Positions 2,149-32,451 of a stretch of 64,000 nt of DNA are shown here, in pieces. The translations under genes and the position numbers were made by a program. This DNA is from Lepidodermella squamata (lineage: Eukaryota > Animalia > Gastrotricha), in NCBI GenBank assembly GCA_047495785.1, contig JBLDXI010000026.1:1-64000 (forward strand), in the 5' to 3' direction. The stretch's first letter is position 1. Each line of letters opens with the position of its first letter. Under the pieces are notes generated by a model that searched no databases, was not told the origin of the DNA, and worked only from the letters and a program-made list of their open reading frames with translations.

Positions 2149-5100
2149 ATGCTTCTGGTCACTTTTCTTTCCATATTATCAACGTCGGCTCTTTTGTGGG
2201 CACCTTCTCAAGCTAAGTCAGGTGAGTCATCTTAAATATCAAATCAGCTTGCGATAATTTTATATCTTTCCGTCAGGAGTATGCCGGCCAACCGGACCTA
2301 GTGATACAGCTAACTGGATTTATTACGTCGGAAAATGTTACGCCCCCATACCAGTCCGTGACTCGGTCAATTTCAACGAAGCCGGGAATATTTGCTCCCA
2401 GCTTTACGGCGCCAGCTCTTCGCTAGCATCGATTGGCGATGAAGAAGTCGCCGGCTTTCTGGTCTCCGACAAGTTCATCTCTGACAGGTTCGTATTTTAT
2501 CGTTGTTTTTACCTTTAAGATTGCTCAATTATATCCCGACAAGAACGCGCTATTAATAATTCACAGCGCGTTTTTAAATAATATAACTCCGAGATAGCGC
2601 GGTGTAAATCATAACCTATTCTCCGGATGTTGATGCAACGCTAATTAGCGCGCATAATTTAATCGATTATTTTTTTACGTGCAGGAAATCGTTCCGAAAA
2701 CTTATGATCGGTCTGCGATTCTCGCGGGGCCACGGCCACTGGGCTGACAATACATTTTACGGACCTTATGGCCAGTCCTATAATCACTTTTCAAGCGGCC
2801 AGGATCCAGTTGCAGCAAGTGCTTCAAGCCCGCATTCCGATCTCTGCACTGTTGTATCGTTCGACCCAGCTCTTGGCCCTGATCCAAGCGCGAACGGGAA
2901 ATGGTAAATTTTACTGAAATAAAACATGAAAAAAACAGAGACGAAACAATAATAAGAAAGCCTCCTTAAAATATTCCTTTTTTGAATTAAGGTCCCTTGT
3001 CGAGTGCTCATCGCGCCTGCAAACGCCTCTTATTGTCTGTGCGCGAATCGCTGATGAATCGGACGAATGTGCACCTGGTAGCCATTTCCGAGCCGATGGC
3101 CTCGGTTGCGTGCCATGCGCACCCGGAACTTACCAGCCTACCGCGAGTCGCACTCGCTGCGAACCATGCTCGCCGCCCCGCGAAGGTTTTATCATTGACA
3201 CCGAGGGCATCGGTGCTACGTCGCAACTTCAGTGCCACCGGCCGCTGCCTCACCTGAACTCGATTGACCCAGGTAATGGGCTGCAGGCCGGTTCGACTAT
3301 GGTCAAACTTGAAGGCGCAAATTTTCTCATCGATTCGAATCTCACCGTCGGTTTCGGCGACTCTTTAGCCACAATTGTCGCTAGTGATCCTACCTACATC
3401 ATTTGCCAATCACCGCCTTATTCGACCATGCAGAGAATCCCAAGTCGCACGAATGGAGTCACGGTTCCGGTTGAAATTCGGTTCTCAAACGGAGTAACGC
3501 GTTCGACATCATTCGTTTACCGGCCAAATCCATCAGTCGATCGCTTTGAACCAACGACTTTTGTCCTCAGTGGTGGACAAAATGTAGCAGTTCGGGGGTC
3601 AGATTTCGACGCGGCCCAGACTCATGGTTTAATCCTGCAAGTGTCCTACCGAGGAACGCCTTATACATCGCTGAGAAGCCACTGCTCCCTCGAATCGCCA
3701 ATGTTGCTGCTATGCAAAACACCCGATCTCAGCGCGTTACTGCCGAAAGCGACCTCGACGATTGCGAGGACAAAGCGGCAAATTTCAAACGCGTTGTGCC
3801 AATCTCCATTCAACGTCCGCGACTGGAGTTTCCGGTTCACGTTCTCCTTCGAACAAACCTTCCAAGTTTCGGCCGATGCTGACGTCCCTGTCGCGATTTT
3901 CGACGATCCTGTCGTCAATAGGTGGACTGAAGACTTTGTCATAACATCGACAGGTGACAATATCTCAATCACCGGGCAACGGCTGTCGTGCGGGGTTAGG
4001 TCGGCAGATGTATCGGTCATGGTCGCCGATCGCCTGTGCGACATCAAGCGAATCACGCCCGAAGAAATCGTCTGCCAGCCGCCGAGGCAAATCTCGCCGA
4101 GTCGTAGTCGAGAGCCTGTTATGGTGCAGGTCGGGGCCCATATTGCGATGGGTGTTGGGTACGTGCGTTACGCCTACACCAACACGCCTACGTTTTTACC
4201 TACCTCTGTGCCGGTATCTACAACACAGAGGGCCACCAATCCAAAAACGACGCCAACCAGACGGCCGAGGGTGAGCATGCCGCCGACAACAGTGGCAACA
4301 CCAAGTACGACTACGACACCGATTTGGCGCCGGAGAATCACAGCACCCGCTCAATTCTTACCACCTAGGGTGCCGCCTCGTCCTACGCCCCCGCCCACTG
4401 TAGCCACCCTACCGACTACGACGACTACAACCACCACGACTACGACAACCCAGGCACCTAGGACAAGGCGAACGACTCGAACGACTTCGACTACTACAAC
4501 AGCTCAATATTACGATAGATTCACCGAACCTGAAATTATTGAGGAGTTCGAAGAGCCGGAAAAGTTCGAATACCCTACGACACGCTTGACTACCCATATG
4601 CCGATCACTGCACGGAAACAGACGGTGACGCCGAAGAATTCGTATTTCGTCACAATTTTCTGGGGACCGAATGGGCCACCTTCAAACACTCCTGCTGATC
4701 TAGCGCCGTTTATCGAGCAGAATCGTCGCGTTACTCCGAAGATGAATGAGCTGAAGTGGAAACAAGCGAGGCTGAAGACGACGGAGCAACCGCTGCCGGT
4801 CAGGGCTTGGCAGCCAGAGCCTGAGCCTGAAGTACCACCTCCACCACCCCCTCCTCCACCACCGTCTCGGCAGCTGAAACAGGAGCAGTGGCAAGATGCG
4901 GAGGAGACAGAGGATTTACAACCGCCAGTTCGGCCATCGAATAAACTGCAAACCGACGAGGCTGTCATTGTCTGGCCACAATCTACGACATTACCAACTC
5001 TACCGCCATGGCATCAACGCGTCGAGCACCAGGAGTTGGCTCATGAGGACACGACAGTTCCTCCGAAAACTCAACAGAACACCCAGGCGGTAAATCACCA

Positions 5101-7501
5101 GAATTCGATTGATGAGCTAGCTACTAATAACGTAATTCAGCGAAGTTCAGTCATGCGTATCACGGCAAGTGACGGCATTTCGTCAACAACTGATGGCTCT
5201 GGGTTGTTCAGTAACCTTGGCGAGTCGCAAACTATGAATTCAGCGCTATTGATCGCCATTGTTGCCGGGGCAACTCTGATCATGTTGATGGTTATCATTG
5301 TCACGGCTGTTGTTGTGACATCGCGAGCCCGTCGCAACAGGCATCGAGCTTGGCGGAAGGGCGGCCGTGACCGGGATCCTCGTAATACTACAAGTACTCG
5401 GTCTTTGCATTCGGCAGATTCGGTCAGTACGATAACTTTCCGAGGTGGCGTTGGAAACTCGGGATCGGGTCTCAGCGAGCATGGAACCATGGTTATTGAA
5501 AATGGCCATGTTCTTACAGGTAAATTCTTGCGATAATCATATAATTTAAATACCGTTGTGTTACCTAAATTGACCCAACCATTTTAAAGTAACCCTAATT
5601 TTTTCAAAACAATGTGTTCACTGAGTGATTGGCTAGCTCAAAATTTGGAATATTTCTAGAAAAAATGGACAGTTAGCAGAGCGTAGTTTCGATCTACAGA
5701 CCTCTGGGTTATGGGCCCAGCGCGCTTCCACTGCGCCACTCTGCTTGTCTGGTTCTAGGGATCTCCGACGCTCTTGTAAGACGTATAAGCATGGAAGTTG
5801 AATCCCGATTTTGAATCCCGAGTAAAACTTGATACTCAGGATTCAATGAGAATTTAAAAAATTTCCCCAGCTGAAGCTTGAATAGTTCTACCAATTTGAA
5901 ATGTATCCAAGGGTTCCAACATGGCGGCTCAGTAGCTTAGTGGTAGAGCGTCTGTCTCGTAAAGAAGATCGCGGGTTCAATTCCCGCCTGGGCCTATCCT
6001 CTATTTTATACTCGCTCGTTGAAATCATCAGTGAAATGGCAGACTTGATCAAGTTTACAAAAGCTTCTTATGGCTGGAAGCAGTGGCGCGCTTCTGTAAC
6101 TCAGCGACTTGAGAGCCGGGCTTGCCGAATGGCTGGCCGGTGGGAGCCCTGTCTCTGGATGTCACATGTCGATCGAGCGCCCCGTGTAAGTACGCCATCA
6201 ACATGGTCGGTGCGGCGGAGGCCGTACTGCCCAGGTTGCGTAATGACACGTCAAAGGTCAGGTCCTAACGGAAGCAGCCTAACGATGTGCGTGGTGAGCG
6301 GTACCGGGACAGTGCTTGTGAATGTGCGCCTTAGCCAGCCCATCGGTTCAGCTGGACGTAAACCTTTTTTTTAAATTTTTCTTATATTTTTAAAATTATT
6401 TTTAAAATGTAATGATTTTCATCCTGATTGCTATAATGACCTTTTTTATCTTATTCAGGTGGCGCCGGAAGCCCAACCTCTAGAGCCAATCTAGCCGCAG
6501 CCGTGGCAACAATCGACCGTCTTCCACTGGTTCTCCATAACAAAATCAATGACATGTTGATCCATGCGAAGCGCATCAAGGTCACCAGCACTTTGGTCCG
6601 AGGCCAATACGGCGATATTTGCCTGGGAAAACTATGGCCAACAAACGCTTCAACACAACACGACACAATAACTGTAACCATCAAAACTCTAAACCGCTTT
6701 GTCATGGACCTGGACTCGACCTCGCTGATTGAAGCTTTCCTTAGCGACGCTCTGATGTTGAAAGGCTTCTACCACCGCAATGTATCTGCTCCATATGCGA
6801 TCGCCTTCAGTGGACAACGGCCTTTAGTCATCTACCCGTTCTACGAAAACGGCAGCCTCAAGTCTTACATCACGAACAAGAACAAAGAAATTCTAGTCTT
6901 TCAACTGCTCGACTTTGCTGCTCAAATCGCGACAGCTATGGTGTACTTATCAGCCCAAAATTTCATCCATAAAGACCTGGCGACCCGAAACTGCGTCGTT
7001 ACGCCTGATTTCGAAGTTAAGGTGGCTGATAATGCCCTGGTTAAGGACGTCCATGGCCGAGAGTACGTTTACGTCGAACAAGCTCGCGATTTCCTGCCTG
7101 TCCGCTGGATGGCTCCGGAATCTTTGACAGATCTTCAATTCTCGCTCAAATCCGACGTATGGTCATTCGGAGTGCTGGTCTGGGAACTTCTAACGCGAGG
7201 CAGATTACCCCATAGCCAGGTCCATAACAGCGAGATAGTGGCTCATCTTCAGCAGCAAGTTCAGCAGCACACCTTGGGCGGATCTAGGCCAGTTATGCGC
7301 CTACCTCGGCCCTCGAATGTCCCACCTGAATTATGCGACATTGTCGACAAGTGCTGCCAACTCGAACCGAGCCGGAGACCGACTTTCGGCTGGTTGCAAG
7401 AGCGCCTGACTACGCTGCTGGACCAACGCCACATGATGGCAGCTTATAACGTTCCAATAATGCCTGTTGAAGGCGGAAATTCGCCGACGACTGGGACCTG
7501 A
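2149..7501 (+). CDS. Receptor tyrosine (pseudo)kinase: signal peptide, C-type lectin, Cys-rich (GCC2_GCC3/ephrin-receptor-like) repeat, 3 IPT/TIG domains, Thr/Pro mucin stalk, TM, RYK-like kinase. Exons approx. 2149-2221, 2277-2488, 2685-2902, 2992-5519, 6459-7501
   Basis: GT-AG joins keep frame. Signal peptide MLLVTFLSILSTSALLW. CTL motifs WIYYVGKCY...FNEAGNIC...LASI. CVPCAPGTYQP...CEPC. IPT pattern PHLNSIDP..G...GSTMVKLEGANF. TM LLIAIVAGATLIMLMVIIVTAVVV. Kinase motifs VTIK, HKDLATRN, DNALVKD, PVRWMAPE, SDVWSFG. Confidence 0.85.
5674..5745 (-). tRNA. Initiator tRNA-Met (CAT), copy 1, intronic
   Basis: Reverse complement AGCAGAGTGGCGCAGTGGAAGCGCGCTGGGCCCATAACCCAGAGGTCTGTAGATCGAAACTACGCTCTGCTA: A1-U72, three G-C pairs in the anticodon stem, ATCGAAA T-loop. 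A T-run terminator follows. Confidence 0.97.
5926..5995 (+). pseudogene. tRNA-Thr(CGT) copy 1 with a 2-nt deletion in the anticodon stem (probable pseudogene)
   Basis: Identical to 20337-20408 except TCTGTCTCGTAAAGAAG versus TCTGTCTCGTAAACAGAAG. A and B boxes are intact. Confidence 0.85.
6073..6368 (+). ncRNA. 7SL / SRP RNA, copy 1, intronic
   Basis: About 296 nt. Alu-domain start GCTGGAAGCAGTGGCGCGCTTCTGTAA, helix 6 with GGAG loop (GGTGCGGC GGAG GCCGTACTG), helix 8 CAGG...AGCA, conserved TGTGAAT, poly-T Pol III terminator. Confidence 0.93.
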
Positions 7502-8332
7502 TTTTTGAAAATTGAAGCTAATCTCTCTCGTCGAAATCTCATTTATACAAGTCGCTCAAATGTGTACAAAAAAATCATCATTTTAAGACGGGTCTGATGA
7601 TGAAATCAAATTGTGTTCAAGCTTCATCTCTATTCGAGTGTGTTTTGTTGTTTCTCCTATTTCTGCTCTTATTTCTCAAAGTTTTCCGCCAACTTCTCAG
7701 ACCTCAGATACGGTTGAATTTCATTTTATTTATAACAAGTGAGAACTTTGAGAGCAGATTTAATTGTATATGTAGAATTTATTTGAAGCTGTATGATAAT
7801 TATTTAAAAACTATAATTATAAATGCTTACGCTGAAATTATTTGCGCTATCGGCGGTACACGCGCCTTGAATTTTCGTGTACCTTCTGTGGCGTTCCTGT
7901 TTTTTCCGAAGAAAATAAAAAGCAAAAGCACTTTTTGATTATTCATAACTTTTTTTCACGGTTGCCCTGGGTTGGAGGAAGAGCGCAGATAACAGTTATC
8001 AACTTAGTGCGGCGATTTCTTGATGAAATTCTACAAGGCCTGTAAGATGAATCACGCCGCTGAGGTGTAATAAAATGAACAAATGAATAGGCAAAAAAGT
8101 GAACAAAGCCATCATTTTTTAAACGTGACTGGAATAAAAAGCGGCGTAAAACATCACCTCATCGCGAAAAAATAGCCATTTCGCTGAATTACTTTTTCCT
8201 GCTGATATAGCCTGTCGTAGAAAATAACTATAACCACGGGCTAATTTACTCAGGAACGGTTATTTGCCCAATCCAATCCTTTTGGTTATATATGCAATTT
8301 TTTTCAAGTACATTTTTAGTGATATTTACGAC

Positions 8333-8785
8333 ATGACATCTACCTTGACCATTTGGAATACAGAAACTGAACCTATTTACATCCGGCTTGAGTCAAATGA
8401 AGGATGTAAGCTGTGCAGGCTGATGCCATGGGTCGGTGGCGTTTTATCACCTTTAGTCTATCACTACCGAGAGAAATATTCAGTCAATCAAACTCTGGCA
8501 GATCGTCTCGATTGGCCTGATAGCGATTTATTAACCTTAGCTGAACTCGGCTTCACAGTTATTGAACCCGGTGGGAGGTGGACATCGGCGAAAATGCCTC
8601 CTGATACTAAGCTGCACTGCCAAATGTTCAAATTTATATGGCATCCTTACGATGGAAGTCAAATGTTGTGCCATTTTATTATGCATCGATTGCGAAGTGA
8701 TACTCAGCCAAATGGAGACAAATTATACTCAATCAAAGGATATTTTCAGCGAAACCCGGATGACGACTGGCAACGCTTAACTTGA
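8333..8785 (+). CDS. Small orphan protein (150 aa)
   Basis: Clean ORF from ATG 8333, preceded by an acceptor-like TTTTTAG, with AATAAA about 33 nt after the stop. Globular composition; no family recognised. Confidence 0.6.
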   Translation: MTSTLTIWNTETEPIYIRLESNEGCKLCRLMPWVGGVLSPLVYHYREKYSVNQTLADRLDWPDSDLLTLAELGFTVIEPGGRWTSAKMPPDTKLHCQMFKFIWHPYDGSQMLCHFIMHRLRSDTQPNGDKLYSIKGYFQRNPDDDWQRLT

Positions 8786-9699
8786 TGTCAGAAATCTGAG
8801 ATATTTTTTGTACGCGTAATAAAAGTTTAGATTGCTATAAGACAAAAAAATGGGGTTTTGATTAGGTGTGATCATTAATAATTCAAAGACAGCAACGAAT
8901 AGAATCATTACGAATTCTACACTCTAAAGATGGCGACACCTATGACAACTTACGCCCTTATTGTCAATATATAGCGCAGGATATACGCGTGGTTTTTTTT
9001 TCTCTGTCACTCGGTCGCGAAAAAATTGAAATTTAGCCAGGAGATTTGAGTGGATTCTCGCGACACTCTATTAATAGCCCCGCCTTCAATTAGACACCAA
9101 ACCGAAATGTTGAGACGCACTGCTTCCGTTTGTAAGCCTCTTTCTCAAATATCTTATGCGAAAAAGCGCTTTGAAGGGTTGCGATGTATATGAATATACA
9201 CGCGGCCTATCGATTTTTCTGCGCTGTAAAAAAAGTTTTGTCTATCTTTTTTTGCCTACCAACAACGTGTTGTATACTCGCTAATGCTGCGGAAATCAGA
9301 GTCGTAGAACCTATGCTGCTGCTGCTGCTGCGTATGCAAAGCCCTCGACAGCTAGTCAAATATTGGACAGTGCTATATGGCGTAGACCCGTTATCACAGC
9401 GAGAGCGCGTAGGGGGGACAGATGATAAAACAAAAGCCCATAAATATACACGGTTACAGTATAATATTATACTAAGCGAGTAGCATTTCAAACCGTGCAC
9501 TTTTTACGATGACTAGACGTTATCTTATCGCCGACCTCGCCCAAATTAGCTAAAAAATTACTGTGAGCTAGGAAACCATGTGACACTTTCATTTCCTTTA
9601 TAGTGTCGCGATTCCACACACTTAAATACGGTCATTTTTGTCGCGCTTGGCAATTATTTTCTTTAATTAAATAGTATGAACTGATCCCTGGGTAGAAAT

Positions 9700-11244
9700 A
9701 TGAAATATTACTGTCAAGTTTGTGGCGTTTTAACGCGGAATCGAGTCCGAACCGGTGCAGCGTTATGCCCGGCCTGCAAGCGGTTTTACCTGCGATACCG
9801 CGGTAAATCGCAGATGTTGCGATGCCTGACCGAAACCAACAAATGCTTGGAACACGAGCCTAACACGGTGAACACAGGATCTGGCAATGTGTTCCGCATC
9901 ATGTGTAAGGCCTGTCGTATTCAAAAGTGCTTCGACCTCGGGCTGGAGAGTACCAACAGCGAGCAAACCAATGATTGCGAGATAACACTCGATAGAAGCT
10001 CAGCATCGCCATCGGGCTCTTCATCAGATATGAAAGCTGAATCATCACCCCCGCCGGAAAAGCTGCAGAAATGCGCCGATGTCGTCTACTACAGCGGCTA
10101 TCAAAACAACCATCACTACCCCAATGCTGCCTCTGTTGTTCCATCATTCAATGCCGGTGATTTGAGCATAACAGAAGAGACATTGCGAGGCATCACCTTT
10201 TCAGGGCGATTCTACGTTGAAAGCATTAGAAGCGTGAGTTGCCTTAATTTTTTCCTTAATTTTTTTGACCTAGATTCTGCTGACAATTAGGAGCCCTTCA
10301 GAATGCACAATGACATTACTGATTTCGGCAACGATGCTTGGAAAAACGAGCTCCTCGGTTTCTTTTCCTCGGCTGTTGTCATTCTTAAACAATTTTTATC
10401 GTCTCTGCCCGGTATAAAAGTCACGCTTGACCTGCCGGTTTTTTATGTCTTAATCATCCCTCTAGGTTACCGAGAACTGTCGTTGGATACCAGGTGTAAA
10501 ATGTTTACCCGGTGCTGCTCGCAAATTAGCATCGCCGAGTGCTGTTCCCACGACGAAGAGCCGCTGATAATGGGCATGAAGCAGAAGATGTGTGGCAAAA
10601 TACTCGAGCGGTTAATTCCTGAATTCGCTGTAAGTATACTTAACTACCGCCTACTACTGATTTCAACTCCTCATTTCCTATAGTTTGTCATCCCTCAACA
10701 AAATGAGATCTGGAGATTCATCAAAATGTGGCAACCTGATGCTGTCGAATTCGCGTTTCTTCTCGCTTTCCTCTTTTATCAAAGTAGTGAGCAGTATCAT
10801 TGGAAAAATATTCCACTCATAACATCGATTTTCGTTTTAGACGACCATGATTTGACTACAGATGAGAATCTCACTATAAGGAATACCTCTCTGCAAATCC
10901 GAGCCGTTCATTGGGCCTACATCGTGCAGGTCTTTGGATCAATGGATCAGCAGTGGTTGACACAGCGGCAATCAATGCTGTATAAAGTTATGGATTTATT
11001 GAATAATGCTGCAGCCACTCGACATGAAGTTCATGCCCTCGAATCAGTTCACGCGCGCATTTCTACTATCGTCAATATGAACGCGATATTTGCTCAGATT
11101 TTAGACTACTGGCGAAAGGAAGCAGTCATGCCGATGCCTACTGTTGGCTCATCGTCTGAGCCAAGCCCAGCAATAACTCCTTATTTTGGTCGTAGCTTTG
11201 AATTCGGTGTTAACTCTGAACTTTCAATTCAGCCTAATATTTAA
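9700..11244 (+). CDS. Divergent nuclear receptor NR-a (C4 DBD + LBD), 5 exons
   Basis: CQVC...CPACKRFY...C..C...CKACRIQKC zinc fingers. LBD signature FLSSLPGYRELSLDTRCKMF and WQPDAVEFAFLLAFLFY. Confidence 0.88.
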
Positions 11245-13328: not shown

Positions 13329-15824
13329 TTAGTAGTGGCTAGAGACATCTATAGTTAATGTCGGCTTTCTCATGAGTGGGAGAAGCCACGTCAATCCTGT
13401 CGTGGCTGAAATCAAGCACGAAGTGAATCCTATCGCCATTTCTTGATCGACAAGATTGCGCACAACCACGACAATCAATATCGTGGCGACAAAAATTGTA
13501 GCAGCATTAACGACACCGAGACTGATGTACGTGAACTCGGGAATATTCCTCGAGCCACCAAGATGACGTAGCTTGAATATAGTAATAGCACCTACCAGCA
13601 GAAGCGCAATATTGATAGTAACAATCGTCATAATCCAAGCTAAATTCGAGGAAGATTGGCATGTTGTAAAAACAGTTTCAACCAGGGTGTCTTGAATGAC
13701 GTCGTAAACAGGCTTCTGCTTTGCCTGAAAGCATGTAAAATTGTCACCGATAATCCATATGGTGACAATCCAAGCAACTACGACTACGAAGGCAATAACA
13801 GCTTTCGCACAAGACTTGTCTATGATCTCAATATACAGGTTTTGTATCCCTGAGTTCCCACCTGAGAATGATGATGACGCGTGAAATGATGCTGACAACC
13901 TATGACTCTCACTTCGATGCATATATTGTTGGCGACGCTGATTCGCGACGTGTTGCGGGGCCATTCTAGACTTTTGACCCTTGTTACTGTTAACAGAGTT
14001 GTTACCTTGTCGAGGAATAGGAGAGGCCCCTATTGAGAATCTTGACCCAGCTATTGTACCCCTCTTGAGCATGTACGTTACTGATCTCAGGCAAACAACC
14101 GCATTGATAAGAGAGAACCCTATCGATACTAGAACAATCCTTGAGATCCAAATAGCCTTAGTTCCGTAACTCAGATCAGCCGTGAAGAATAATCCGCCAA
14201 TGTTGAGAGCAATCCCTCCAACATATCCCAAGATTTTTGTCAAAAACATTCCTCTTTCTCCGTAGTCGCTGAAAAAGGCAGATCTTATTAGTATAGCTGT
14301 GCCCAGAAGGTGAATACATGACGATAGTATTGCTAGAACAAGAACTACTATGAAGACTTCACTAGAGACACCCATAAGTTCGATTAGCTGCAACTTCGAA
14401 TCTCGAGGAGGTAACCCTTCAGCAGTTTGCCACACCGGATCACGAACTTTCTTCATCCAGTAGTGCTTGTAGTGATATCCATTCGTTTTAGGATGCTGAT
14501 AAACGTTGTTGATATACTGTAAACGGTCTTTGGGCGTCCAGTAGCTGACAAACTGAATGTCACCATCGACTTCACCAACATCGTTGTAGCGCATCCTGCC
14601 CATCCGCAATCCCAAATAGTCCACAGCTATTGCAGTCTTGTTTACTACATCTGCGACGATATCAGGCCGGTCTCTCATGTTCCTCAGAGACATGTTTTGA
14701 GCTTTCAGAGCCAAGTCTGCATTATGAAGAGTTATCAGGCCCTGCATCATGGTGTCATGGCAGAGCAGCCTTCGCTCGTAGTCATACACCTTTTCGCGCG
14801 TATTGTTTGTGTATCGGTCGTAGATTGCATCGAATTCGGTCAAGTCGTAGCCTAGAACAGTTTTCACACTCGGTTCATTCGTTGTCATAATTGGAGCGAC
14901 CCAGTATGTGTACTTCATCTGTTCGATCACAACGTTCCGAAAACATCCGGGGCTTATTTCGTTGGCCAGTCCTAAGGGGTCTGCATAGCCAACCCCCAGA
15001 AGTATCAAAATGTACCTGGGACCAGTTAATCCAAACTTGTAAGTCTGACATAGGAACTTCCAGATCCAGCCAGCACTTGAAGATGACAGCACTATGATTC
15101 GGACATCGCTGCTCAACAGGTTACGCATCGAATCGTCGTCGACATCGAGGACAATGTCGAAGAACCCAATTGAAATGTTAGTCTGGTCCAATGCTACCCT
15201 GAGAAGAGCCGTTGCTGTTGTATAGTCGAAAACGCTCGCAGCGTTAGTCAGGATGCCCATACGCTTCCAACCACCTGATTCTGCGACGAAACGAGTGATG
15301 GCATACGAAAGAACACGGCCAGTTGATCGCATCATATACAGGTTAGGGTATAGAGTGCGATCTGAGAGGAATGGCGCGGCACAAGCGATACTCACACTAA
15401 CCGAGTAGAGATGCTTCAAAGGGGGAACCATAGCTTTGCATCCAGTGGACATCTGAGGTCCGACGATCACAGGTGACTGGTAAGTATTGTTCCGATCAGA
15501 ACCTTCGTAACTTCGACGGAAAGACGCTGCTAAGCGGGCCGCGTGAACTCCGGTGTTCTCGTCTTCAAATTGAATCTGTGCACGACGTTTGAATATATTT
15601 AGTTGTTCAGTTCATGAAACTACCTCAATGTTGTAGTCGGGAAGAATATCCGAGCGACTGTTTGCTATGTCGACAGCGATTTGAGAGGCCGTGCGGCATG
15701 CATATCCATTGGACGGAGCATTGCCCGTGAATGACATCATCTCTAGCACTACCATTTTATACGGCTTGGTAGCAAGAATTACAGCAAAGTTGCATATCAT
15801 CAGCGAACTACGGAGAAGCATCAT
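13329..15824 (-). CDS. GABA-B-like class C GPCR, copy A (exons 15824-15624, 15575-13329)
   Basis: Signal peptide. Venus-flytrap motifs AVDIANSRSDILPDY, IVGPQMSTGC and LSDRTLYPNLY. No Cys-rich domain. Seven hydrophobic helices. Confidence 0.88.
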
Positions 15825-16597: not shown

Positions 16598-19094
16598 TCA
16601 TAAACTGTTTATCGAATTCAGGGGGGCTGGCTTAATCAAGGGCCATATCCAAGTGAGACCTGTCGTCGATGAAATCATACAGGCTAGGAAGCCGATAGCC
16701 ATTTCTTGATTTATAAGGTCGCCAACGACCAATACAATTAAAATAGTGGCCAGAAACGTGGAGATGGTATTCACTAAACCCAGAATCAGGAAAGTAAACT
16801 GCGGAATCGTTCTCGGGCCCCCAAGGTGACGTAGCCTGAACGCAACAAAAGCCGCGGCCATCATCAGCAAAACATTCATCAGAACAAGTGCCATGATCCA
16901 AGCAATGTTCTTTGTAGATCGGCAAGAAGTGTAAACGGTCTCAAAGATAGTGTCTTCAATTAAATCGTAGACAGGCGGCTTGATAAGTCTAAAGCAGCGG
17001 AAATTATCGCCAGTCAGCCAAGCTGTAAGGATCCAGCCAGTTATTCCCGTAAAAATGATGGAATTCTCAGCGCAGGATTTATCAGCTGATTCTATCGTAA
17101 CGTCAGCAACCACTGACGAAGTTGGTTCCGAAGAGTAACGAGCGGGCGTAACGCTGATGAGAATCGGCGTTGAAGATTTTCCGCCTTGAGGATACACGGA
17201 AAGGGTTTTGCTTCGCGGCCTTTCGAATATCCTTTCGCTGTCGACGGTCTTAACTTGTCTGGCTATCGTTGAACGGACCGCTGTCGGCAACCTCGGGCGA
17301 ATATGAAAGCTGCTTCTGAGCATAAAAGAAATTGGTCTAAAACATACTACAGCATTTAAAATGGAGAAGCCTGTTGAGACAAGTACGATTCTCGCAATCC
17401 ACAAAGGCCTTGCGATATCAGTAGTATCAGCGGTAAACAGGACACCACCAACATTCAGAGCAATCCCACCAACATGACCCATAAGTTTCGATATACTCAT
17501 GTCTGCTGAAACTAGGCTGCTGGAGGCTAAAGACCTAATTATTAGAACAATGCCAGTAAAATGTATCGATGACGATATGATTGCGAGAGCAAGGACGATA
17601 AAGAAAAATTCTCTAGGCACCATGGCGTACTTCATGACAAGACGAATACTGTCCCTAGGAGGTCGCTGATCAGCAGTTTCCCAAACTGGCTCGCGAATTT
17701 TCTTCATCCAGTAGTGCTTGTAGTGATAACCATTTGTGTTAGGATGCTGATAGACGTTGTAGATGTACTGCAAACGGTCTTTGGGCGTCCAGTAGCTGAC
17801 AAACTGAATGTCACCATCAACTTCACCAACATCGTTGTAGCGCATCCTACCCATCCGCAATCCCAAATAGTCCACAGCTATTGCAGTCTTGTTTACTACA
17901 TCTGCGACGATATCAGGCCGGTCTCTCATGGTCCTCAGCGACATATTTTGAGCTTTCAGAGCCAAGTCTGCATTATGAAGAGTTATCAGGCCCTGCATCA
18001 TGGTGTCATGGCAGAGCAGCCTTCGCTCGTAGTCATACACCTTTTCGCGCGTATTGTTTGTGTATCGGTCGTAGATTGCATCGAATTCGGTCAAGTCATA
18101 GCCAAGAACAGTTTTCACATTCGGTTCATTCGTTGTCATAATCGGTGCGACCCAGTATGTGTACTTCATCTGTTCGATCACAACGTTCCGGAAACAGCCA
18201 GGGATCACCTCGTTCGCCAGACCCAAAGGATCCGCATAACCGACTCCAAGAAGGATTAAAATGTACCTGGGTCCGGTTATTCCAAACTTGTAAGTCTGAC
18301 ATAGGAACTTCCAGATCCAGCTAGCACTGGAGGATGACAGAACTATGATTCTGACGTCGCTACTCAACAGGTTACGCATCGAATCGTCGTCGACATCGAG
18401 GACAATGTCGAAGAATCCGATGGAAATGTTAGCCTGGTCCAATGCAACCCTGAGAAGAGCAGTCGCTGTTGTGTAGTCGAAAACACTCGCAGCGTTAGTC
18501 AGGATGCCCATGCGCTTCCAACCTCCTGATTCTGCCACGAAACGAGTGATGGCATACGAAAGAACACGGCCAGTCGAGCGCATCAGGTACAGATTAGGGT
18601 ATAGAGTTCGATCTGAAAGGAATGGCGCGGCACAGGCGATACTCACGCTAATCGAATTCATGTGCTTCAATGGCGGAGCTAACGCCTTGCAACCAGTTGA
18701 CATTTGTGGCCCAACGATTACCGGCGACCGAATTGTATTGATCCGGTCTGAGTTTTCAAAGCTACGCAGAAATGCACCAGCAGCTCGTGCCGCTTGTACT
18801 CCTGTGTTTTCATCTTCGAATTGGATCTAAACAACAGTAATTCATCCCACGCTTTACGATTTCGCAATCACTAACCTCGAGTTGATAGTCAGGAAGGATG
18901 TCCGATCGGCTGTTAGCAATATCGACGGCAATTTGTGACGCGGTACGGCAGGCGTAGCCATTTGCAGGCGCATTTCCGGTGAAAGACATCATTTCTAATA
19001 TCACCATCCGATAAGGTTTCATCATGTAAGTCGATGAAGTTGCTACGTCTGAAATCATAGCAAAGCAAAGAATTGCCGCGTAGTACTCAGGCAT
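16598..19094 (-). CDS. GABA-B-like class C GPCR, copy B (exons 19094-18876, 18826-16598)
   Basis: Tandem paralog of copy A with the same single intron, a near-identical flytrap domain and 7 TM helices. Confidence 0.88.
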
Positions 19095-20094
19095 TTGGCT
19101 TTGTGTTTGAAACTTGAAAATTCCGGTATAATCTTCGCTCCAAAATTTTCTCGCCTGCTGCAGATTAAACCTCGGTAATATAATTTGATCCCGTATTTTA
19201 GTTAGACGGCTCAGGAAACTGGGAGCTGGCTAATTAAATTCTCCGGAAGAACAGAAGATGCATGTGTCAATTAACTGTTGAGCAATCGGCTCGAAATTAA
19301 TTAGTAATTAGCCTGTGATCACGAATCACGAAACGCCTTCAAGCCGTCGTTTGAGCAGGAGAAGCCGGCTTCAACCCACGAAATTTCCTTGCACGTCGAG
19401 TTTGCTTGCAGTACCGGCTCGCCCACATACCTATGCACACGTGCTTTGGCAGTTTTATGCTCTAAGCAGCGAGACAACTTCTAGCAAGCCATCACTTTCA
19501 ATTTACAAACTGTTTCATTTGACGCGGACAAAATTCACCTTCAGTCCATGGGGCCATAGAAACCTATTCGTGGCCGCTCTCAGATTTCAGAGGGCAAAGA
19601 TCAAGGAGTCCAAACATTCACAGCCGAGACAATACGTTATTACTTATTTGCATTTCATTTTAATGTATGCACGAAAACATCCGAGGAGAAATTTCCTAAT
19701 CATCTTCTAGCAAAAAATGCAGGATCCAGGCTGCTTCATACGATTCATACGATTCAAGGAGCAATCGAAAAGAGTTTCTTATAAATCAAGCCTGGCTCAA
19801 AAAAGCAGTTGGTTAGAATTTATGCAGAGCTTCAAGTATGAAAGCTTGAAGCTTGAAGTCGAAAATTTATTTCGAAGAACAAATTTCACGATTTTTTCCG
19901 GAGTAGCATCGCCGACCTGTGTACCCAGCAATGATATTTTCTCCAATAGACAATTTACTATTGGCGCATTGTACGTGAACTTGAATACACGAACTGGAAT
20001 GAATCAGACCAGATTGATTGAAAATCTGTAGGGAATAACTTGATAGATGGAATCGATTTGAAAATAAAACGGATCGGGTGAAAAAATTGACATT

Positions 20095-20166
20095 TAGCAG
20101 AGCGTAGTTTCGATCTACAGACCTCTGGGTTATGGGCCCAGCGCGCTTCCACTGCGCCACTCTGCT
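20095..20166 (-). tRNA. Initiator tRNA-Met (CAT), copy 2
   Basis: Identical 72-nt sequence to 5674-5745. Confidence 0.97.
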
Positions 20167-20336
20167 TGTCTGGTTTTCGACCTCTATCGGACTGTTGTAA
20201 AACCCGAAAGCATGAATATTGATATTACTTAATCTCGACTCAAGTTTTAATCAATTAAGAATTTCACTAAAATCTCCTCAGCTGAAGCTTGAATAGTTCA
20301 ACCAATTTCAAATGTACCCAAGGGTTCCAACACGGC

Positions 20337-20408
20337 GGCTCAGTAGCTTAGTGGTAGAGCGTCTGTCTCGTAAACAGAAGATCGCGGGTTCAATTCCCGC
20401 CTGGGCCT
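20337..20408 (+). tRNA. tRNA-Thr (CGT), intact
   Basis: Full cloverleaf: acceptor GGCTCAG/CTGGGCC, anticodon arm TCTGT-CTCGTAA-ACAGA, T arm GCGGG-TTCAATT-CCCGC. Confidence 0.96.
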
Positions 20409-20488
20409 ATCCTCTAATTTTTACTCGCTCTTTTCGAGTTCAAAAGTGAAACTAGCAGACTTGATCAAGTTTACAAGAGCTTCTTATG

Positions 20489-20784
20489 GCTGGAAGCAGT
20501 GGCGTGCTTCTGTAACTCAGCGACTTGAGAGCCGGGCTTGCCGAATGGCTGGCCGGTGGGAGCCCTGTCTCTGGATGTCACATGTCGATCGAGCGCCCCG
20601 TGTAAGTACGCCATCAACAAGGTCGGTGCGGCGGAGGCCGTACTGCCCAGGTTGCGTAATGACACGTCAAAGGTCAGGTCCTAACGGAAGCAGCCTAACG
20701 ATGTGCGTGGTGAGCGGTACCGGGACAGTGCTTGTGAATGTGCGCCTTAGCCAGCCCATCGGTCCAGCTGGACGCAAACCTTTT
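20489..20784 (+). ncRNA. 7SL / SRP RNA, copy 2
   Basis: Four substitutions relative to copy 1; T7 terminator at 20781-20787. Confidence 0.93.
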
Positions 20785-21506
20785 TTTGATTTTTTTTAAA
20801 TATTTTTCGAAAGTTTTTGAATTTTCAATAATTTGTATGCTCGTCAACCGAATTTACTCCGGCTTAATTTTTCATTTTTGGTTGAATACTGCAATGAGAG
20901 ATAATTTCGGAGAAAACCATGTTTTTCGAGTGCATGGAAAGTAAATAAAATCATTTGTTACATCGTATGATGAATCATCATTGTCCCCAGCTAACATGCT
21001 AGCATCTTAATTTTTGATGCAATCGAAATTTGGGCACGGAGCCTATTTTGAATGTTAGGAACGGCGGCGGCTTACGCGGTCGAGCTCAGCAATGTCCTCG
21101 TTTCGGTCAAACCATATCCTAAATCACCAAAAATTCCATTATTCCACGGTATTCGCAATCACAATTCGCCGTTCTCATAGCCGCAAAAGAAACCCGTTCT
21201 CGAATATTAATCACATTTTTGGAAAACCAAAACCGTAATGTGTATGTTAGTTGGATGGCTTTAAATGTGAACGTGAAATTATCTTCTGATCCCCATTTTT
21301 CAAATCAATTTTTTTATTATGGATTTTCGCGCGTCATTGGTCAAATCTGGTCCTTTTTTATTGGAGACCCAACGTCTGATATAGAGAACAATGAATGAAC
21401 AATGAATGACTGTCCAATATCTCATATTTTCGAGGGCAGAAGCTAGGCGGGAAACAGCCTCGTGGCGACCACACCCTCTCAACCACGCCCTCTTTTTTCT
21501 TCTAGG

Positions 21507-23541: not shown

Positions 23542-25122
23542 TCAAATATTTTGAGACAATTCTTTAATCACTTTCCACGCGAAATCAATGTCAGCATTCG
23601 TAGATTGTGATGAACAAATCGCCAGTCTGAGCATGTAAACACCCCTGAAAAAAACACGAAATATTGTTTCTAAATAGTTCAAAATTATCTATGGAAACTT
23701 ACTTGACCTTCGTTGGAACAAGATGGATCCTGTTATCAGCCAAAATTGCTTTGTACAGCGATTCAGTCGCCTGGTTACACCGAGCCAAGTCATCGCATGG
23801 CTTCAATCGGAAGCAAACCAGACCGAGTACGACCTTGGCTGTAATTTCGAATCTGTTATCTGCTTCGATCAATTGTTTGAAATACATCGCTTTGTCAACC
23901 ATTTCTCGAATGTGCTCTTGAATTTTCCGAACGCCGTAGCTTCGAAGAACGAAAAACAGCTTTAACGAGCGAAATTTCCTGCCAAACGGAATTTGCCAGA
24001 AACGAAAATCTGGCATCGAGCAATTTTCATGGCTATTCCGCAGATAAACCGGATCGATTTTGAAAGCCTCACTGACCAAGGTCCCATCTCTGAACCACAT
24101 CGCCGAGCAATCAAAGTTGACCAACATCGATTTGTGCGGGTTGAAATTGAACGAATCCGCAGATTCAATGCCGTTGAGGAGCGGTCGAAATTCCGGGCAG
24201 CAAAACGCGCTGCCGGCATAGGCGGCATCGACATGCAGCCAAATCGGAGTGTTCAAGTTGGATTTCGAGTTGAACTCATCGATAACTCGGCTAATTTCAG
24301 CCAAATTATCGAAAGCGCAAGTATTAGTCGTGCCCAAAGTGGCGCAGACGAAAAATGGAATCAGCCCTGATTTCTCAGCATTTTCAATCGCCAGCCTCAA
24401 CGCTTCGCCTCTCATCGCATTATCGGAATCGGTTTCGACATTGACGAAATGTTGAATCGCTCCAAACATTCCAGCTCGTTCAACTGTTAGATGAGCCTGG
24501 TCTGAGGTGAATGCCACCAATCGGTCTAAAGTTTGGCCGGTTGTCATTCCGAGAGATTTCTTGCAGTCTTCAAAAGCTCGATTTCGAGCTGCACTCAATG
24601 CTGTTAAGGTGGCTTCACCTGCCGTGCCATGGATTACCCCGCCACCCTTGCCTTTCGACGAGAATAGGAAATGATCCGGTAGTTCCAACAGTTTAGCTAA
24701 CCAATCCATCATAACTGTCTCCAGTTCGGTACTGCTAGGGTTCGATGCCCAAGTGAAACCCATTGAACCAATCGCATTCCTGAAAAAAATAATTAATTAC
24801 CCATAATTAATTAAGGAGGCTGGACCCACGAAAGCATGTCAGCTATCATTGAAGGATAAGAAGTCGCCATTGCGTAATATCCAAAAAATTTAGGCGAGTG
24901 CCAATGAGCAGCGCCGGGTAGTATTGCCGAGTTGACATCTGCGAGAATATCGTCGAACGCCTCTGAATTTTGAGGCGCTTCGGGTGACAACAGCGGAGGT
25001 AGGAACCCTGGTTTAAATTCGGTTGAAGAAGGAAAAGCAGGTCTATCTCGGATATTGTCGAAATAGTTAGCGATGAAGTCTACCATCGCCTTGCCACGGC
25101 TTCTAAACTCCTCGCTATTCAT
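23542..25122 (-). CDS. Ddc: Aromatic L-amino acid decarboxylase (Ddc-like), 3 exons
   Basis: MNSEEFRSRGKAMVDFIANY, HWHSPKF, GFTWASNPSSTELE, SDQAH, WLHVDAAYAG and the PLP lysine motif NPHK. WQIPFGRKFR has Gly as in DDC, not Ser as in HDC/TDC. Orthology not tested. Confidence 0.88.
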
Positions 25123-26970: not shown

Positions 26971-28306
26971 ATGTCTACTACCAGAACTGCAGGAGATCAG
27001 TATAAAAGGAATTAGCAATCGATTAAAATAGTTAAATATGATTTTTCCAATTCAGGGAGTTGGGTCTAGTCAACGGTGCACCGAAACAAAGAAAAAAGAG
27101 CGAACAATGCGACGTCATTTGTTGGAAAACGGTCACCGGATCGGTCATCTTCATCGCCTTGGCTTGTGTCATTATTCTTGGAGTCTACATTTTCCATCAA
27201 AGAGTACTTTTTCGGTTCCATCTTTGACCTAATATTAATAATTGATGTTATAATAGGCTATAATCAATCGCTTGGAGCAGCCATCGGAACCCTCAGCTGC
27301 TGCTGCATTGGAATGCGAAGATCCAATGGTTATTAGTCCCCTACCTGAAGCTGCGATCACCTGCGAATTCAACGTTGCAGAAGAAACGGCCGGGTTTCTA
27401 ACCTTCGACAACGGATCTGTCATTACGACTGGCAAGAATTTTCCTCAAAATACAGTGCTAATTCTACACTGCCCAAAGGACCACCGGGTCGTAGATGGTC
27501 GATCGTTTTCGAGCTGTAGAAAGAGTGGAGAATTCGCGCCGAAACTCGGCACTTGTCTATCACCGAGTCGATTGGAGGATGAACAAAAGAAGCTGGCGAA
27601 ATCAGCGGCTACGGGAGATTCAACTGAATTGGCTAGGTTGTTATCCCTCGGCTATCTCAACGTCAACTGGCGAGATCCTTCCGAGATCGATGAATGCTTT
27701 CTATGGCCTGTAAGCTCTGGCACCGCGCTACATCGAGCTGTAGATTGCAGCCGCTCGCCAACAGCTATTTTACAGCCATTGATCGACGCTGGGGCAGATG
27801 TTGATTCTGCTGAGACAACAAATAACGCAAGGCCTCTTCATTTCGCGGCAGCTCTCGGAAATTCGGCTACGGTTGACCTGCTCTTGAAGAAGGGCGCGCA
27901 TGTCAACGCGACAATGAAAGATGGGACATCGGCGCTGTGGCACGCCTCGGAACAGGGCCATCTATCAGTGGTGAATCTTCTCATCTCGAGTAGGGCTGAT
28001 TTTTACGCAACAACCTGGGGTGGGGGCTATTCGCCACTTCATGCCGCGGCAGCTAATGGTCATCTCGAGGTGGTGAAAGCATTGTTGGACGGCAATAAAT
28101 CCGACAAAAATTACATCAATTTCATAGCGGAATCTGGGAAAAGTGGCTCGCCGCTTATTGAAGCAGTTCTGAAAAATGAACTGGAAATTGTTCTGGAACT
28201 GGTGAGGCGAGGCGCAGATGTCAACCTGCAAAAAATTGATGGCAGTACAGCAATTTCTATCGCACAGCAAAAAGGATACGATGAAATTCTGCAAATTTTA
28301 CAGTGA
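26971..28306 (+). CDS. Type II membrane protein with Sushi/CCP domain followed by about 6 ankyrin repeats, 3 exons
   Basis: Exons 26971-26999, 27056-27203, 27257-28306. TM VTGSVIFIALACVIILGVYIF. Sushi C...LHCPKDHRVVDGRSFSSCRKSGEFAPKLGTC. ANK motifs TALHRA, PLHFAA, SALWHA, SPLHAA. Confidence 0.8.
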
Positions 28307-29435: not shown

Positions 29436-30473
29436 TCAAAAGCGAGCGCCTTTTTGTTTTAGAAAGTTGACAACTTTATATTGTTTCGCTTGAGTAGCTA
29501 GCATCAACGGGGTCTGGTTGTTTTTGTTGCGCGCCTCCAGCATCAACTGATCACGACACCGGTCCAACATGAATTCAACAACACGAAGATTGCCTTTAGC
29601 GGCTGCTAAATGTACGGCTGAATTTCCCATAGCATCATTCGCGAATAAGAAGACATTTCGTTTCGCCAGATAATCAACACACATCCAGTGGCCCTTTTCG
29701 GCCGCATTTAGTAGGGGCGTCTTGCCGTTAGCATCCTTCGACTCGGCTGAAATCTGGCACGTTTCCAACAGGTATTTCAACAGCTCCAAATGACCACTCG
29801 CAGCCGCTATGTTAGCTATAGTATCTCGTAATTTCGACTCGGATTCTAGGAGTAATTTTACGAGATCCAACTTGCCGGCTTCCGTTGCTTTCTGTAACAA
29901 AGCCGCTGTGTCTAGGCCGCTTAACTTCGCCCCTCGTTGAAGCAGCAATCGAACAGCATCGACGTGATTGTGTTCGGCTGCGAACATCACCGGAGTTTTC
30001 TTAGCACGACTCACGTGATTTATGTCGAATAGCGTAGGCGGCTCAAGGTCAAGGAAATAGGTCAAAATTTCCACGTGGCCACAAGCCGCTGCTAAATGAA
30101 GGGCGCTGTAGCCAAGCTCGTAGAGTCTAGGACTTATCCTAGGGTCGTAATCCAGCGGCCTTAAATCTGCACCGGAGTCGACCAGAAATTTGACGAGCGG
30201 CAAATTTCCAAGGGCGACTGCTTGGAGGACCGGCGTTTGTTCCGGGAATCCGACCGGTAAAGGCTGCCAAGTTACATGGTGGATATCGGCCTTTTTCTCC
30301 TGAACCAAATACTTGACCAGGGTTAACTTCCCGCTTGAAATTGCTGCATTAAGAAGTGTAGCTCGATTCACGCGGTGTTCTTCTTCCAAAAGATCGGGAT
30401 CACTTTTCAAAATTTTCTTTACATCTTTCAAGTGGCCTTTCGCAGCAGCATCGTGAAGTTGCACCAGTATCAT
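29436..30473 (-). CDS. Intronless ankyrin-repeat protein
   Basis: About 9 ANK repeats (SALHLAAACGH, TPVMFAAEHNH, TPLLNAAEKGH). Start taken at MILVQLHDAA. Confidence 0.85.
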   Translation of the reverse strand: MILVQLHDAAAKGHLKDVKKILKSDPDLLEEEHRVNRATLLNAAISSGKLTLVKYLVQEKKADIHHVTWQPLPVGFPEQTPVLQAVALGNLPLVKFLVDSGADLRPLDYDPRISPRLYELGYSALHLAAACGHVEILTYFLDLEPPTLFDINHVSRAKKTPVMFAAEHNHVDAVRLLLQRGAKLSGLDTAALLQKATEAGKLDLVKLLLESESKLRDTIANIAAASGHLELLKYLLETCQISAESKDANGKTPLLNAAEKGHWMCVDYLAKRNVFLFANDAMGNSAVHLAAAKGNLRVVEFMLDRCRDQLMLEARNKNNQTPLMLATQAKQYKVVNFLKQKGARF

Positions 30474-31332
30474 TGAAGCATAAAAAGCAGTTTTGATAGA
30501 GAGTTTTTTCACACGCACCGGGGGGCCGTATCTCAGGCTGTATAGCACAGGTATAATAATGTGATATTGCCTAAAACAAGCAGAAAAACAACGTTTTATT
30601 ACAATATTTACTAAGTGATTCACTCAAAGGCATATTACATCAGCAATTTTATCAAAAAACTTGGCGGTCGAAAATATAATCTCGCAGTATCTGCGAAAAA
30701 TCGTTATCTCTATTATAGTACTAGAATTATACATGCATCCAGCAGCCAGCTCCAGAAGGGCATTTCAGCTGTGATATGATAATCGATGCGATAATGCGCA
30801 TCGCTTTTATGCATTATTTGTGGTATAGGGATAAAAAAAATTGAATTTTTAAGAGATGGCACAATAATTTTTTGTACTATCCTCTAATTGGCAAAACGCG
30901 ATCGAATGCGGTTCTCCTTCAAGGAAATTCAGAACGCCGGAAGACTCTTCTGGTAAATTCCCAATCTATACAATATCAAAGGAAATTGCGGTGTGGTGCA
31001 AGGGTGCACGCAAAACTTTATTGGTTTCGCGATGACTGGAGAAGGAAAAAAATTTATACAACACATCGTTTTACATATACACAAAACATTATTTTCTTCA
31101 TATCCCATTCGAGTCCTTCGCTTTATTGCGCCCCCTGAATCACCGATCGATACAAGTAATTGATGAATGGCACGGCGAGTACAACTACTACCACAGCGGC
31201 TGAACCACGCTGCATATTTAAAGAAATAATGATGAATAAAAAATGTCGCGCAATATAAATTTGCACAAGGGGCTGGAATTATTTCCGTGAACAAAACCCG
31301 CCGCCGCATGGGAGCTGTTGCCGGAAAAAGCA

Positions 31333-32451
31333 TCATTCAACGCCGCCTCTAAATTTCAACAAATTCGCAGCATAAATTTGATTTCGAGCCGAGGCCACAG
31401 ATAAAGCGGTTTGCTGTTGGTTATTCCGGCGGTTAATCATTTCCTTTGATATTCGAAGTATATTTGCCATTATTTGATTATGGCCATTCGCAGCAGCTAA
31501 ATGAAGCGCAGTGTCCCCGTTGCAGTCGGACGTAGTAACATCCGCAGAATTTTCAATAAGGTGACTGACCACGTCAAGATGACCATTCTCGGCTGCGCTC
31601 ATCAGCGCTGATTTCCCATTCGAACCCACGGAATCAATGTCGAGATGACATTTCTTCAACAGAAATTTCACTGTTTGAAGCTGACCACCAGCAGCGGCTG
31701 AATTCAGCAGAAGATCCCCATTTGAATTTGTAGAACTCAACAGTTCAGGTTTAAGATGAAGAATAATTTTCAGCAATTCTAAATAGCCGGCTGCAGCCGC
31801 CTTATGAGCAACACTGTCGAAATCGAACCCATCGAGATCGATTCCTTTTTGTTGAATAAGGAAGGAAACGACTTCCAGATGACCATTTTGGCCAGCCAGA
31901 ATAATCGCGGTGTAATTACTCGCGTTTCGAAGATTAATTTCTGCCCCATTTTGAAGGACCAAGAGATGAACTATGCTGAGATGACCATTAGATGATGCAA
32001 CCATTAGAGGGGTTTCGACAATTTTCGAGCCGACCACTCCGTTCAATGATTCAGGATTAAGTCGTAATAGGTAATCGGCAATGTCCAAGTGGCCACATCT
32101 AGCGGCAAAGTGAAGAGGAAGATGCCGGGTTGAACTGTCTTCCGACATAGGAACGGCCCCATTTTCCACGAGGAGTTTAACAATTTGAAAATGACCAAGG
32201 GTTGTAGCAAAATGTACAGCAGTTTGGCCGTTCGATCTTTTCGTTAAATCGGCTCGTTTTTCCGTAACTAGGAATTTGACCAGAGGTAAACTCCCACTTT
32301 TTATTGCCCAAAATAACACTGTGTCGCTAGCTTCCAGCAAATCGGGCTTCTTTTTCAGGATTTTCCTAACCTGAGCAAGCCGTCCAGCTGTAGCAGCCTC
32401 ATACAAGGCCGTAAGGTCGCGATTTTCAGGTGACATGAGTTCAAAAGCCAT
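31333..32451 (-). CDS. Intronless ankyrin-repeat protein, tandem paralog
   Basis: 372 aa, about 10 ANK repeats. N-terminus VRKILKKKPDLLE matches VKKILKSDPDLLE in the neighbour. Confidence 0.88.
   Translation of the reverse strand: MAFELMSPENRDLTALYEAATAGRLAQVRKILKKKPDLLEASDTVLFWAIKSGSLPLVKFLVTEKRADLTKRSNGQTAVHFATTLGHFQIVKLLVENGAVPMSEDSSTRHLPLHFAARCGHLDIADYLLRLNPESLNGVVGSKIVETPLMVASSNGHLSIVHLLVLQNGAEINLRNASNYTAIILAGQNGHLEVVSFLIQQKGIDLDGFDFDSVAHKAAAAGYLELLKIILHLKPELLSSTNSNGDLLLNSAAAGGQLQTVKFLLKKCHLDIDSVGSNGKSALMSAAENGHLDVVSHLIENSADVTTSDCNGDTALHLAAANGHNQIMANILRISKEMINRRNNQQQTALSVASARNQIYAANLLKFRGGVE

Follow-up and report, generated by a model that had tools for sequence, protein, structure and literature searches.

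The first 64,000 nucleotides of contig JBLDXI010000026.1 from the gastrotrich Lepidodermella squamata (assembly GCA_047495785.1; this whole stretch is hereafter called the window) encode, at 2149-7501 on the forward strand, a receptor that joins a degenerate kinase to an unusual ectodomain. Our best explanation, which we hold at a probability of roughly 0.6, is that this is one type-I receptor gene combining a lectin-like domain, a cysteine-rich repeat, three IPT domains, a mucin-like stalk, a transmembrane helix and a RYK-like pseudokinase, and that it represents a small lineage of IPT receptors, as yet without a name, that lack Sema and fall in the superclade of MET, AXL and RYK kinases. A preliminary description of the same DNA had proposed a domain-shuffled, possibly glycan-sensing pseudokinase receptor of RYK type.

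One gene for ectodomain and kinase

Reading the three forward frames together with the splice signals resolves 2149-7501 into one five-exon animal gene, in which introns 1-4 are all GT..AG with compatible phases (Table 1). The exons were searched singly for domains and homologues, with the continuous open reading frames (ORFs) of a relative serving as a stand-in for the full protein. This relative is a 1288-residue protein (P0001) on ENA metagenome contig ERZ27333047 k141_583841 (L001), and it was the sole true relative found in a word search with the exon 4 ectodomain (73% identity over the ectodomain). On L001, the counterparts of exons 4 and 5 form a single uninterrupted ORF (6011-9877), as do those of exons 2 and 3 (5534-5998). 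The predicted 5519/6459 and 2487/2685 junctions are equal in length to the relative, residue for residue and with no indel. The L001 gene has fewer introns, with no counterpart of the window gene's introns 2 and 4, and the contig is not syntenic with the window, as genes for a zf-C2HC protein and a sodium:solute symporter lie downstream. The single ORF and the indel-free match at the junctions are strong comparative evidence that ectodomain and kinase belong to one gene and that both junctions are real, as the preliminary description had supposed for the lectin/IPT ectodomain and the kinase.

The locus might instead hold two genes. The first would encode a membrane protein without a kinase and would stop at 5534-5536; the second, starting from 6459, would encode a separate cytoplasmic kinase. 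Read-through of the donor at 5520 does reach a stop after five codons, and three RNA polymerase III (Pol III) genes lie inside intron 4. We consider this arrangement extremely improbable, given that both parts lie in the relative's uninterrupted ORF with identical junction length and that in the kinase exon no start codon precedes the juxtamembrane sequence that can be aligned. In a single gene, an intron-4-retained, kinase-less and membrane-anchored isoform could exist beside the full-length form.

A lectin-like, IPT-bearing ectodomain without WIF or Sema

By Pfam, WIF (PF02019), Sema and PSI are found neither in any exon nor in P0001, in agreement with the preliminary description, which had noted that WIF and Sema were missing. 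The same scan did detect Sema and PSI in other proteins (P0093, P0140, P0141, P0057 and P0061), and its result for P0001 equals that for the window exons (TIG, Ephrin_rec_like and PK_Tyr_Ser-Thr). At the position of the furin-type RTKR site in the second IPT domain, P0001 has RIKR.

The N-terminal domain is taken as a divergent C-type-lectin-like domain. In phmmer searches of the PDB, all nine matches of exon 2 were C-type-lectin-like (DEC-205, 7e-06; snaclecs, about 0.01), as were 13 of 14 matches of the corresponding L001 domain, and 29 of the 30 language-model neighbours of the lectin-like domain were Lectin_C clusters. The PDB matches are individually weak (0.009-1.6, with snaclecs, REG4, PLA2R and CLEC4D at 0.009-0.3), and the DEC-205 match reaches 2e-10 when summed over ten DEC-205 domains.

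Sugar-binding C-type lectins carry the Ca2+/carbohydrate motifs EPN or QPD, plus WND. These positions read QDP and WSL in both the window and L001, with WSL spanning the exon 3/exon 4 boundary, so that no Ca2+-dependent binding of sugar is to be expected. The earlier suggestion of a glycan-sensing receptor is thus left unsupported, and judging from these residues the domain is more likely to be a protein-binding than a sugar-binding module.

A degenerate kinase under strong constraint

The whole kinase-like domain is confined to exon 5 (PK_Tyr_Ser-Thr, PF07714, E=1.4e-65). As the preliminary description had read, its G-loop lacks the first glycine (VRGQYG), HKD stands in place of HRD and DNAL in place of DFG. 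These degenerate motif strings are identical in P0001. Among the other single-kinase matches, the 65 nearest have canonical motifs, and the next one (P0173, from Batillaria) has DAA. The WIF-bearing RYK/Dnt/Drl proteins read xEGxFG, HKD (P0192 alone has HRD) and DNA, DNS, DSA or DSS, and P0225, which lacks WIF and is grouped with the RYKs, reads DTA. The combination of HKD and DNAL had been called the RYK signature, and this holds for one half of it: DNA is RYK's alone among human receptors, whereas HKD is common to PTK7, ROR1, ROR2, RYK and STYK1 (PMC13259870, Table 2).

We compared the proportions of nonsynonymous (pN) and synonymous (pS) differences between the window gene and L001. The kinase exon is 93% identical to P0001 at the protein level, with a pN of 0.057 and a pS of 0.85, and pS is saturated (0.78-0.94) in every part but exon 2 (0.65). 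Elsewhere pN is 0.15 in the cysteine-rich repeat, 0.19 in the IPT domains, 0.16-0.22 in the lectin-like exons and 0.44 in the stalk, which is the least conserved part (40% identity, many gaps). Degenerate as it is, the kinase-like domain is under tighter constraint than any other part of the protein and is therefore functional.

From its motifs, this domain is probably inactive. A contrasting view is that it is a weak or unusual enzyme and that the receptor signals by phosphorylation, like MET. The beta3 lysine (of VTIK), the catalytic aspartate and the asparagine (of HKDLATRN), the aspartate of DNA, the APE motif and, in a MET-like loop, the two activation-loop tyrosines (EYVYV) are all retained; the constraint is very strong; and the PDB kinase matches run in order from MET/RON (1e-47) through MER/AXL to RYK (6.5e-41). 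However, three motifs are altered together, in the set of changes that defines RYK, a pseudokinase with the motifs QxGxxG, HKD and DNA and an occluded ATP site (PMC13259870, Table 2), and the alpha-C glutamate is replaced by aspartate as well. We therefore think a catalytically active receptor quite improbable and favour a pseudokinase.

Relatives and rarity of the architecture

When the kinase exon was compared exhaustively by HMMER with 1.84 billion cluster representatives, P0001 matched at 93% identity and the other single-kinase matches at 43% or less. Among the named neighbours in a length-limited word search, MET/RON-like proteins (about 170 bits) scored above RYK/Dnt proteins (about 135-155 bits), and 16 RYK/Dnt/Drl matches of that search carry WIF. 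The full architecture of lectin-like domain, cysteine-rich repeat, three IPT domains, stalk and RYK-like kinase was found, besides the window, only in the metagenome relative P0001, and the combination of a lectin-like domain, IPT domains and a RYK-like kinase is not described in the literature searched. This agrees with the preliminary description, which did not recognize the architecture. A profile word search (from an alignment of P0001, P0272 and Owenia) returned unrelated kinases only, probably drawn by low-complexity stalk words, and is uninformative on the spread of the family.

Kinase phylogeny

Trees of 63 kinase domains (IQ-TREE, LG+C20 PMSF) were computed with or without 29 motif columns and with or without a kinase from Batillaria attramentaria (P0270). 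The window kinase and P0001 always fell in the MET/AXL/RYK superclade (100/96-99), separate from the kinases of InsR, ROR, FGFR and SRC, and in all four trees the WIF-bearing RYKs formed a 100/100 clade without the window kinase. When all columns were used, the window kinase was sister to RYK at 97/96 without P0270, and grouped with P0270 as sister to RYK at 89/89 when the latter was included. After the 29 motif columns had been masked, it was again sister to RYK in the absence of P0270 (72/77); with P0270 present, the two formed a group (95/87) that fell within the MET-like set, next to the annelid kinases of Ephrin_rec_like/IPT type (87/66). Approximately unbiased (AU) tests rejected neither alternative placement (p=0.21 for the MET-like one with all columns; p=0.35).

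Much of the RYK signal sits in the residues that define the RYK resemblance. We regard the kinase as RYK-like and possibly RYK's sister, not as RYK proper, and its RYK-like residues may reflect either a sister relationship to RYK or a parallel origin. The earlier label of a RYK-type kinase is accordingly retained for the motifs and for the sister position in most trees; it does not extend to membership of the WIF-RYK clade, and a MET-like placement is not rejected.

Several observations weigh against our best explanation. The 5519/6459 junction is backed by sequence comparison, not RNA, and P0001 may be a co-ortholog, the two contigs being non-syntenic. The lectin-like domain lies below the Pfam Lectin_C threshold, whether as exons or as the 154-residue L001 ORF, and a single-sequence AlphaFold model of it (predicted local distance difference test score, pLDDT, of 35) is unusable. 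The ectodomain of the preliminary description is thus upheld for the cysteine-rich repeat, the three IPT domains, the RTKR site and a stalk of more than 300 residues (340 here), and less securely for the C-type lectin domain. In the trees, the window kinase has a long branch (1.3-1.8 changes per column), and its position shifts once the 29 motif columns are masked. ATP binding or activity could possibly persist, as the beta3 lysine, the catalytic aspartate, the asparagine and the metal-binding aspartate are kept.

Origin of the architecture

The Sema-less core of cysteine-rich repeat, IPT domains and kinase is not unique to the window gene, because receptors of Owenia fusiformis and B. attramentaria share collinear ectodomain parts. 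Three Owenia receptors (CAH1793776-8; P0268, P0060 and P0269) likewise combine Ephrin_rec_like, three IPT domains, a transmembrane helix and a kinase of the same superclade, and residues 35-420 of P0001 are collinear with 223-602 of P0268 from the cysteine-rich repeat through the three IPT domains (BLASTP E=5e-16). They differ in having canonical, presumably active kinases (GKGQFG, HRD and DFG) and two cysteine-rich repeats (in P0060 and P0268, Pfam reports Ephrin_rec_like twice, TIG and no Sema), in lacking a long mucin stalk and in showing no detectable lectin-like domain (P0268 included). The kinases of Dimorphilus (P0098) and Paralvinella (P0103) group with the Owenia receptors, but in neither does Pfam find this ectodomain. 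The group (P0060/P0268/P0269, P0098 and P0103) is not named in the literature searched. Many MET-like invertebrate receptors among the matches also have TIG without a Pfam Sema match.

The Batillaria protein (KAK7484905; P0270) comes closer in its kinase. It has three collinear IPT domains (E=9e-13; one reaches Pfam TIG) and a degenerate kinase that is 37% identical to that of the window, with VTIK, EYVY and RWMAPESL, and the two kinases group together at 95/87 on the masked alignment. In contrast to the window gene, LamG-like and laminin-EGF parts replace the lectin-like domain and cysteine-rich repeat at the N-terminus, HRD is kept and DAA stands in place of DNA; both branches are long. What is distinctive in the window gene is the presence together of a lectin-like cap, a mucin stalk and a RYK-like dead kinase.

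The preliminary description had called the receptor chimeric. A true chimera would have arisen by shuffling of a RYK-derived kinase exon onto an Ephrin_rec_like/IPT ectodomain, with WIF replaced. Such an origin would fit the position of the kinase as sister to the WIF-RYKs when all columns are used, with or without P0270, the four derived states in common with RYK (loss of the first G-loop glycine, a residue other than alanine in VAIK, HKDLATRN and DNA) and the confinement of the entire kinase to an exon of its own. Yet the kinase never falls within the RYK clade, support for the sister position drops to 72/77 when the motif columns are masked, and masking with the mollusc P0270 included moves it beside the annelid IPT kinases. 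Moreover, unrelated pseudokinases also carry HKD (PMC13259870), and no intron interrupts the relative's gene where the two parts would have been joined. We regard a chimera as a minority possibility, somewhat unlikely on this evidence. Vertical descent with decay of the kinase appears at least as likely as shuffling, because active annelid receptors have the core of cysteine-rich repeat, three IPT domains and kinase together as one unit, and the domain shuffling claimed earlier is thus not demonstrated.

A further idea, tentative and in our judgement unlikely, is that the window gene and P0001, perhaps together with Batillaria P0270, form a lineage that survives as the sister of RYK. The RYK pseudokinase would then derive from an IPT-bearing receptor of MET type, and the D-x-A motif would predate the gain of WIF. 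If true, RYK, an isolated family of pseudokinases only, would have an origin that can be traced and an obvious relative for comparison.

Comparison with known receptors

The window gene resembles RYK, Derailed and LIN-18, the WIF-domain Wnt co-receptor pseudokinases, in its single membrane pass, in a G-loop without the first glycine, in HKD and DNA, and in the clade nearest to its kinase in most trees. It differs from them in lacking WIF, in an ectodomain about five times longer, in an alpha-C glutamate replaced by aspartate and in a kinase that stands outside their clade. With MET/RON and the Met-LP proteins of Lophotrochozoa and Echinodermata (PMC6374515) it shares IPT domains before the membrane, a furin-type site and a MET-like loop with two tyrosines, and MET/RON have the best overall similarity to its kinase. 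Unlike them, it has no Sema or PSI domain, its kinase motifs are degenerate, it lacks the C-terminal bidentate docking site, and its furin-type site lies in an IPT domain and not in a Sema domain. The published lophotrochozoan survey of Met and Met-LP took the Sema domain as its key, and Sema-less proteins of this kind are outside its coverage (PMC6374515).

In the window gene, a receptor tyrosine pseudokinase carries an ectodomain that has been exchanged or extended, a kind of variation known among these receptors. Sweet Tooth of Hydra is reportedly a receptor tyrosine kinase with C-type lectin domains. The Venus kinase receptors are lineage-specific invertebrate receptor tyrosine kinases with a borrowed ectodomain (PMC2680970). 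Both illustrate that the ectodomains of receptor tyrosine kinases are swapped freely, lectin domains included; they differ from the window gene in having active kinases of other families.

Gene features and genomic context

Table 1 Features of the receptor gene and its fourth intron (window coordinates; aa, amino acids).
Feature	Position	Strand	Remarks
Exon 1	2149-2221	+	ATG and 24-residue signal peptide; hydrophobic core, SQA|KS cleavage-like site; donor GTGAGT at 2222
Exon 2	2277-2487	+	N-terminal half of divergent C-type-lectin-like domain; in-frame 2279-2485
Exon 3	2685-2903	+	C-terminal half of lectin-like domain; in-frame 2686-2901
Exon 4	2992-5519	+	Lectin-like end, cysteine-rich repeat, IPT domains, stalk, transmembrane helix, juxtamembrane part
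Lectin-like end (last strands and cysteines)	2992-3040	+	W...C....C pattern, start of exon 4
Ephrin_rec_like (TNFR-like) cysteine-rich repeat	3104-3235	+	PF07699, 27.2 bits against a cut-off of 23.1; exon 4 residues 38-81
Three IPT/TIG domains	3248-4177	+	PF01833, E=1.6e-21, three stretches
IPT 1	3248-3520	+	
IPT 2	approximately 3524-3892	+	
RTKR, furin-type R-X-K/R-R site	3767-3778	+	Insert of second IPT
IPT 3	approximately 3905-4177	+	
Mucin-like stalk	4208-5227	+	340 aa; 18.8% Thr, 15.9% Pro; poly-Thr and poly-Pro runs
Transmembrane helix	5243-5317	+	Kyte-Doolittle maximum 2.87; then basic stop-transfer stretch and juxtamembrane part to 5519
Intron 4	5520-6458	+	939 bases, GT..AG, phase 1
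tRNA in intron 4	5674-5745	-	Rfam
tRNA in intron 4	5926-5995	+	Rfam
7SL RNA gene in intron 4	6073-6367		Rfam
Exon 5	6459-7501	+	Juxtamembrane end, kinase-like domain 6578-7408, short tail, stop codon 7499-7501
VRGQYG	6596-6613	+	G-loop without first Gly; motif reading
VTIK	6674-6685	+	Motif reading
Alpha-C Asp replacing Glu	within 6737-6751	+	Motif reading
HKDLATRN	6968-6991	+	HKD for HRD; motif reading
DNA	7028-7036	+	For DFG; motif reading
EYVYV	7061-7075	+	Activation-loop tyrosines kept; motif reading

Intron 4 was either gained in the lineage of the window or lost in the relative, because the relative's gene has no intron there. Its Pol III cassette (5659-6391) is duplicated 14 kb downstream at 20080-20807 with 89.8% identity. 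Directly downstream of the receptor gene lies an ORF with a nuclear-receptor C4 zinc finger (9700-10287, forward strand; PF00105, 22.6 bits, just over the cut-off). It is followed by two long ORFs of class-C G-protein-coupled receptor type on the reverse strand (13332-15470 and 16601-18703), with ANF_receptor in both and 7tm_3 in the first; these are probably tandem paralogs. A pyridoxal-dependent decarboxylase exon (23702-24763, reverse strand, E=3e-111) and, after it, three ankyrin-repeat ORFs (27272-28303, forward; 29439-30623 and 31336-32451, reverse) were also found.

Proposed mechanism and significance

In the working model that we propose, the ectodomain would bind a protein ligand or partner, held off the membrane by a fast-evolving stalk that is presumably O-glycosylated, and the receptor may be cut at RTKR as MET and RON are. 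Without catalysis of its own, the pseudokinase would act in signalling as a scaffold or an allosteric partner, as RYK, ROR and PTK7 are thought to, and an active kinase may phosphorylate the EYVYV tyrosines in trans.

The receptor pseudokinases RYK, ROR and PTK7 are few and old, their signalling is poorly understood, and all are tied to Wnt binding. The practical weight of the present case is limited, with only one close relative known. The finding also suggests that spiralian animals have a group of IPT receptors without Sema that has not been described, one to which surveys keyed on Sema were blind (PMC6374515). A conserved, RYK-like dead kinase on an ectodomain that is not of Wnt type would mean either that this set of changes evolved twice or that the RYK module also serves other ligands.

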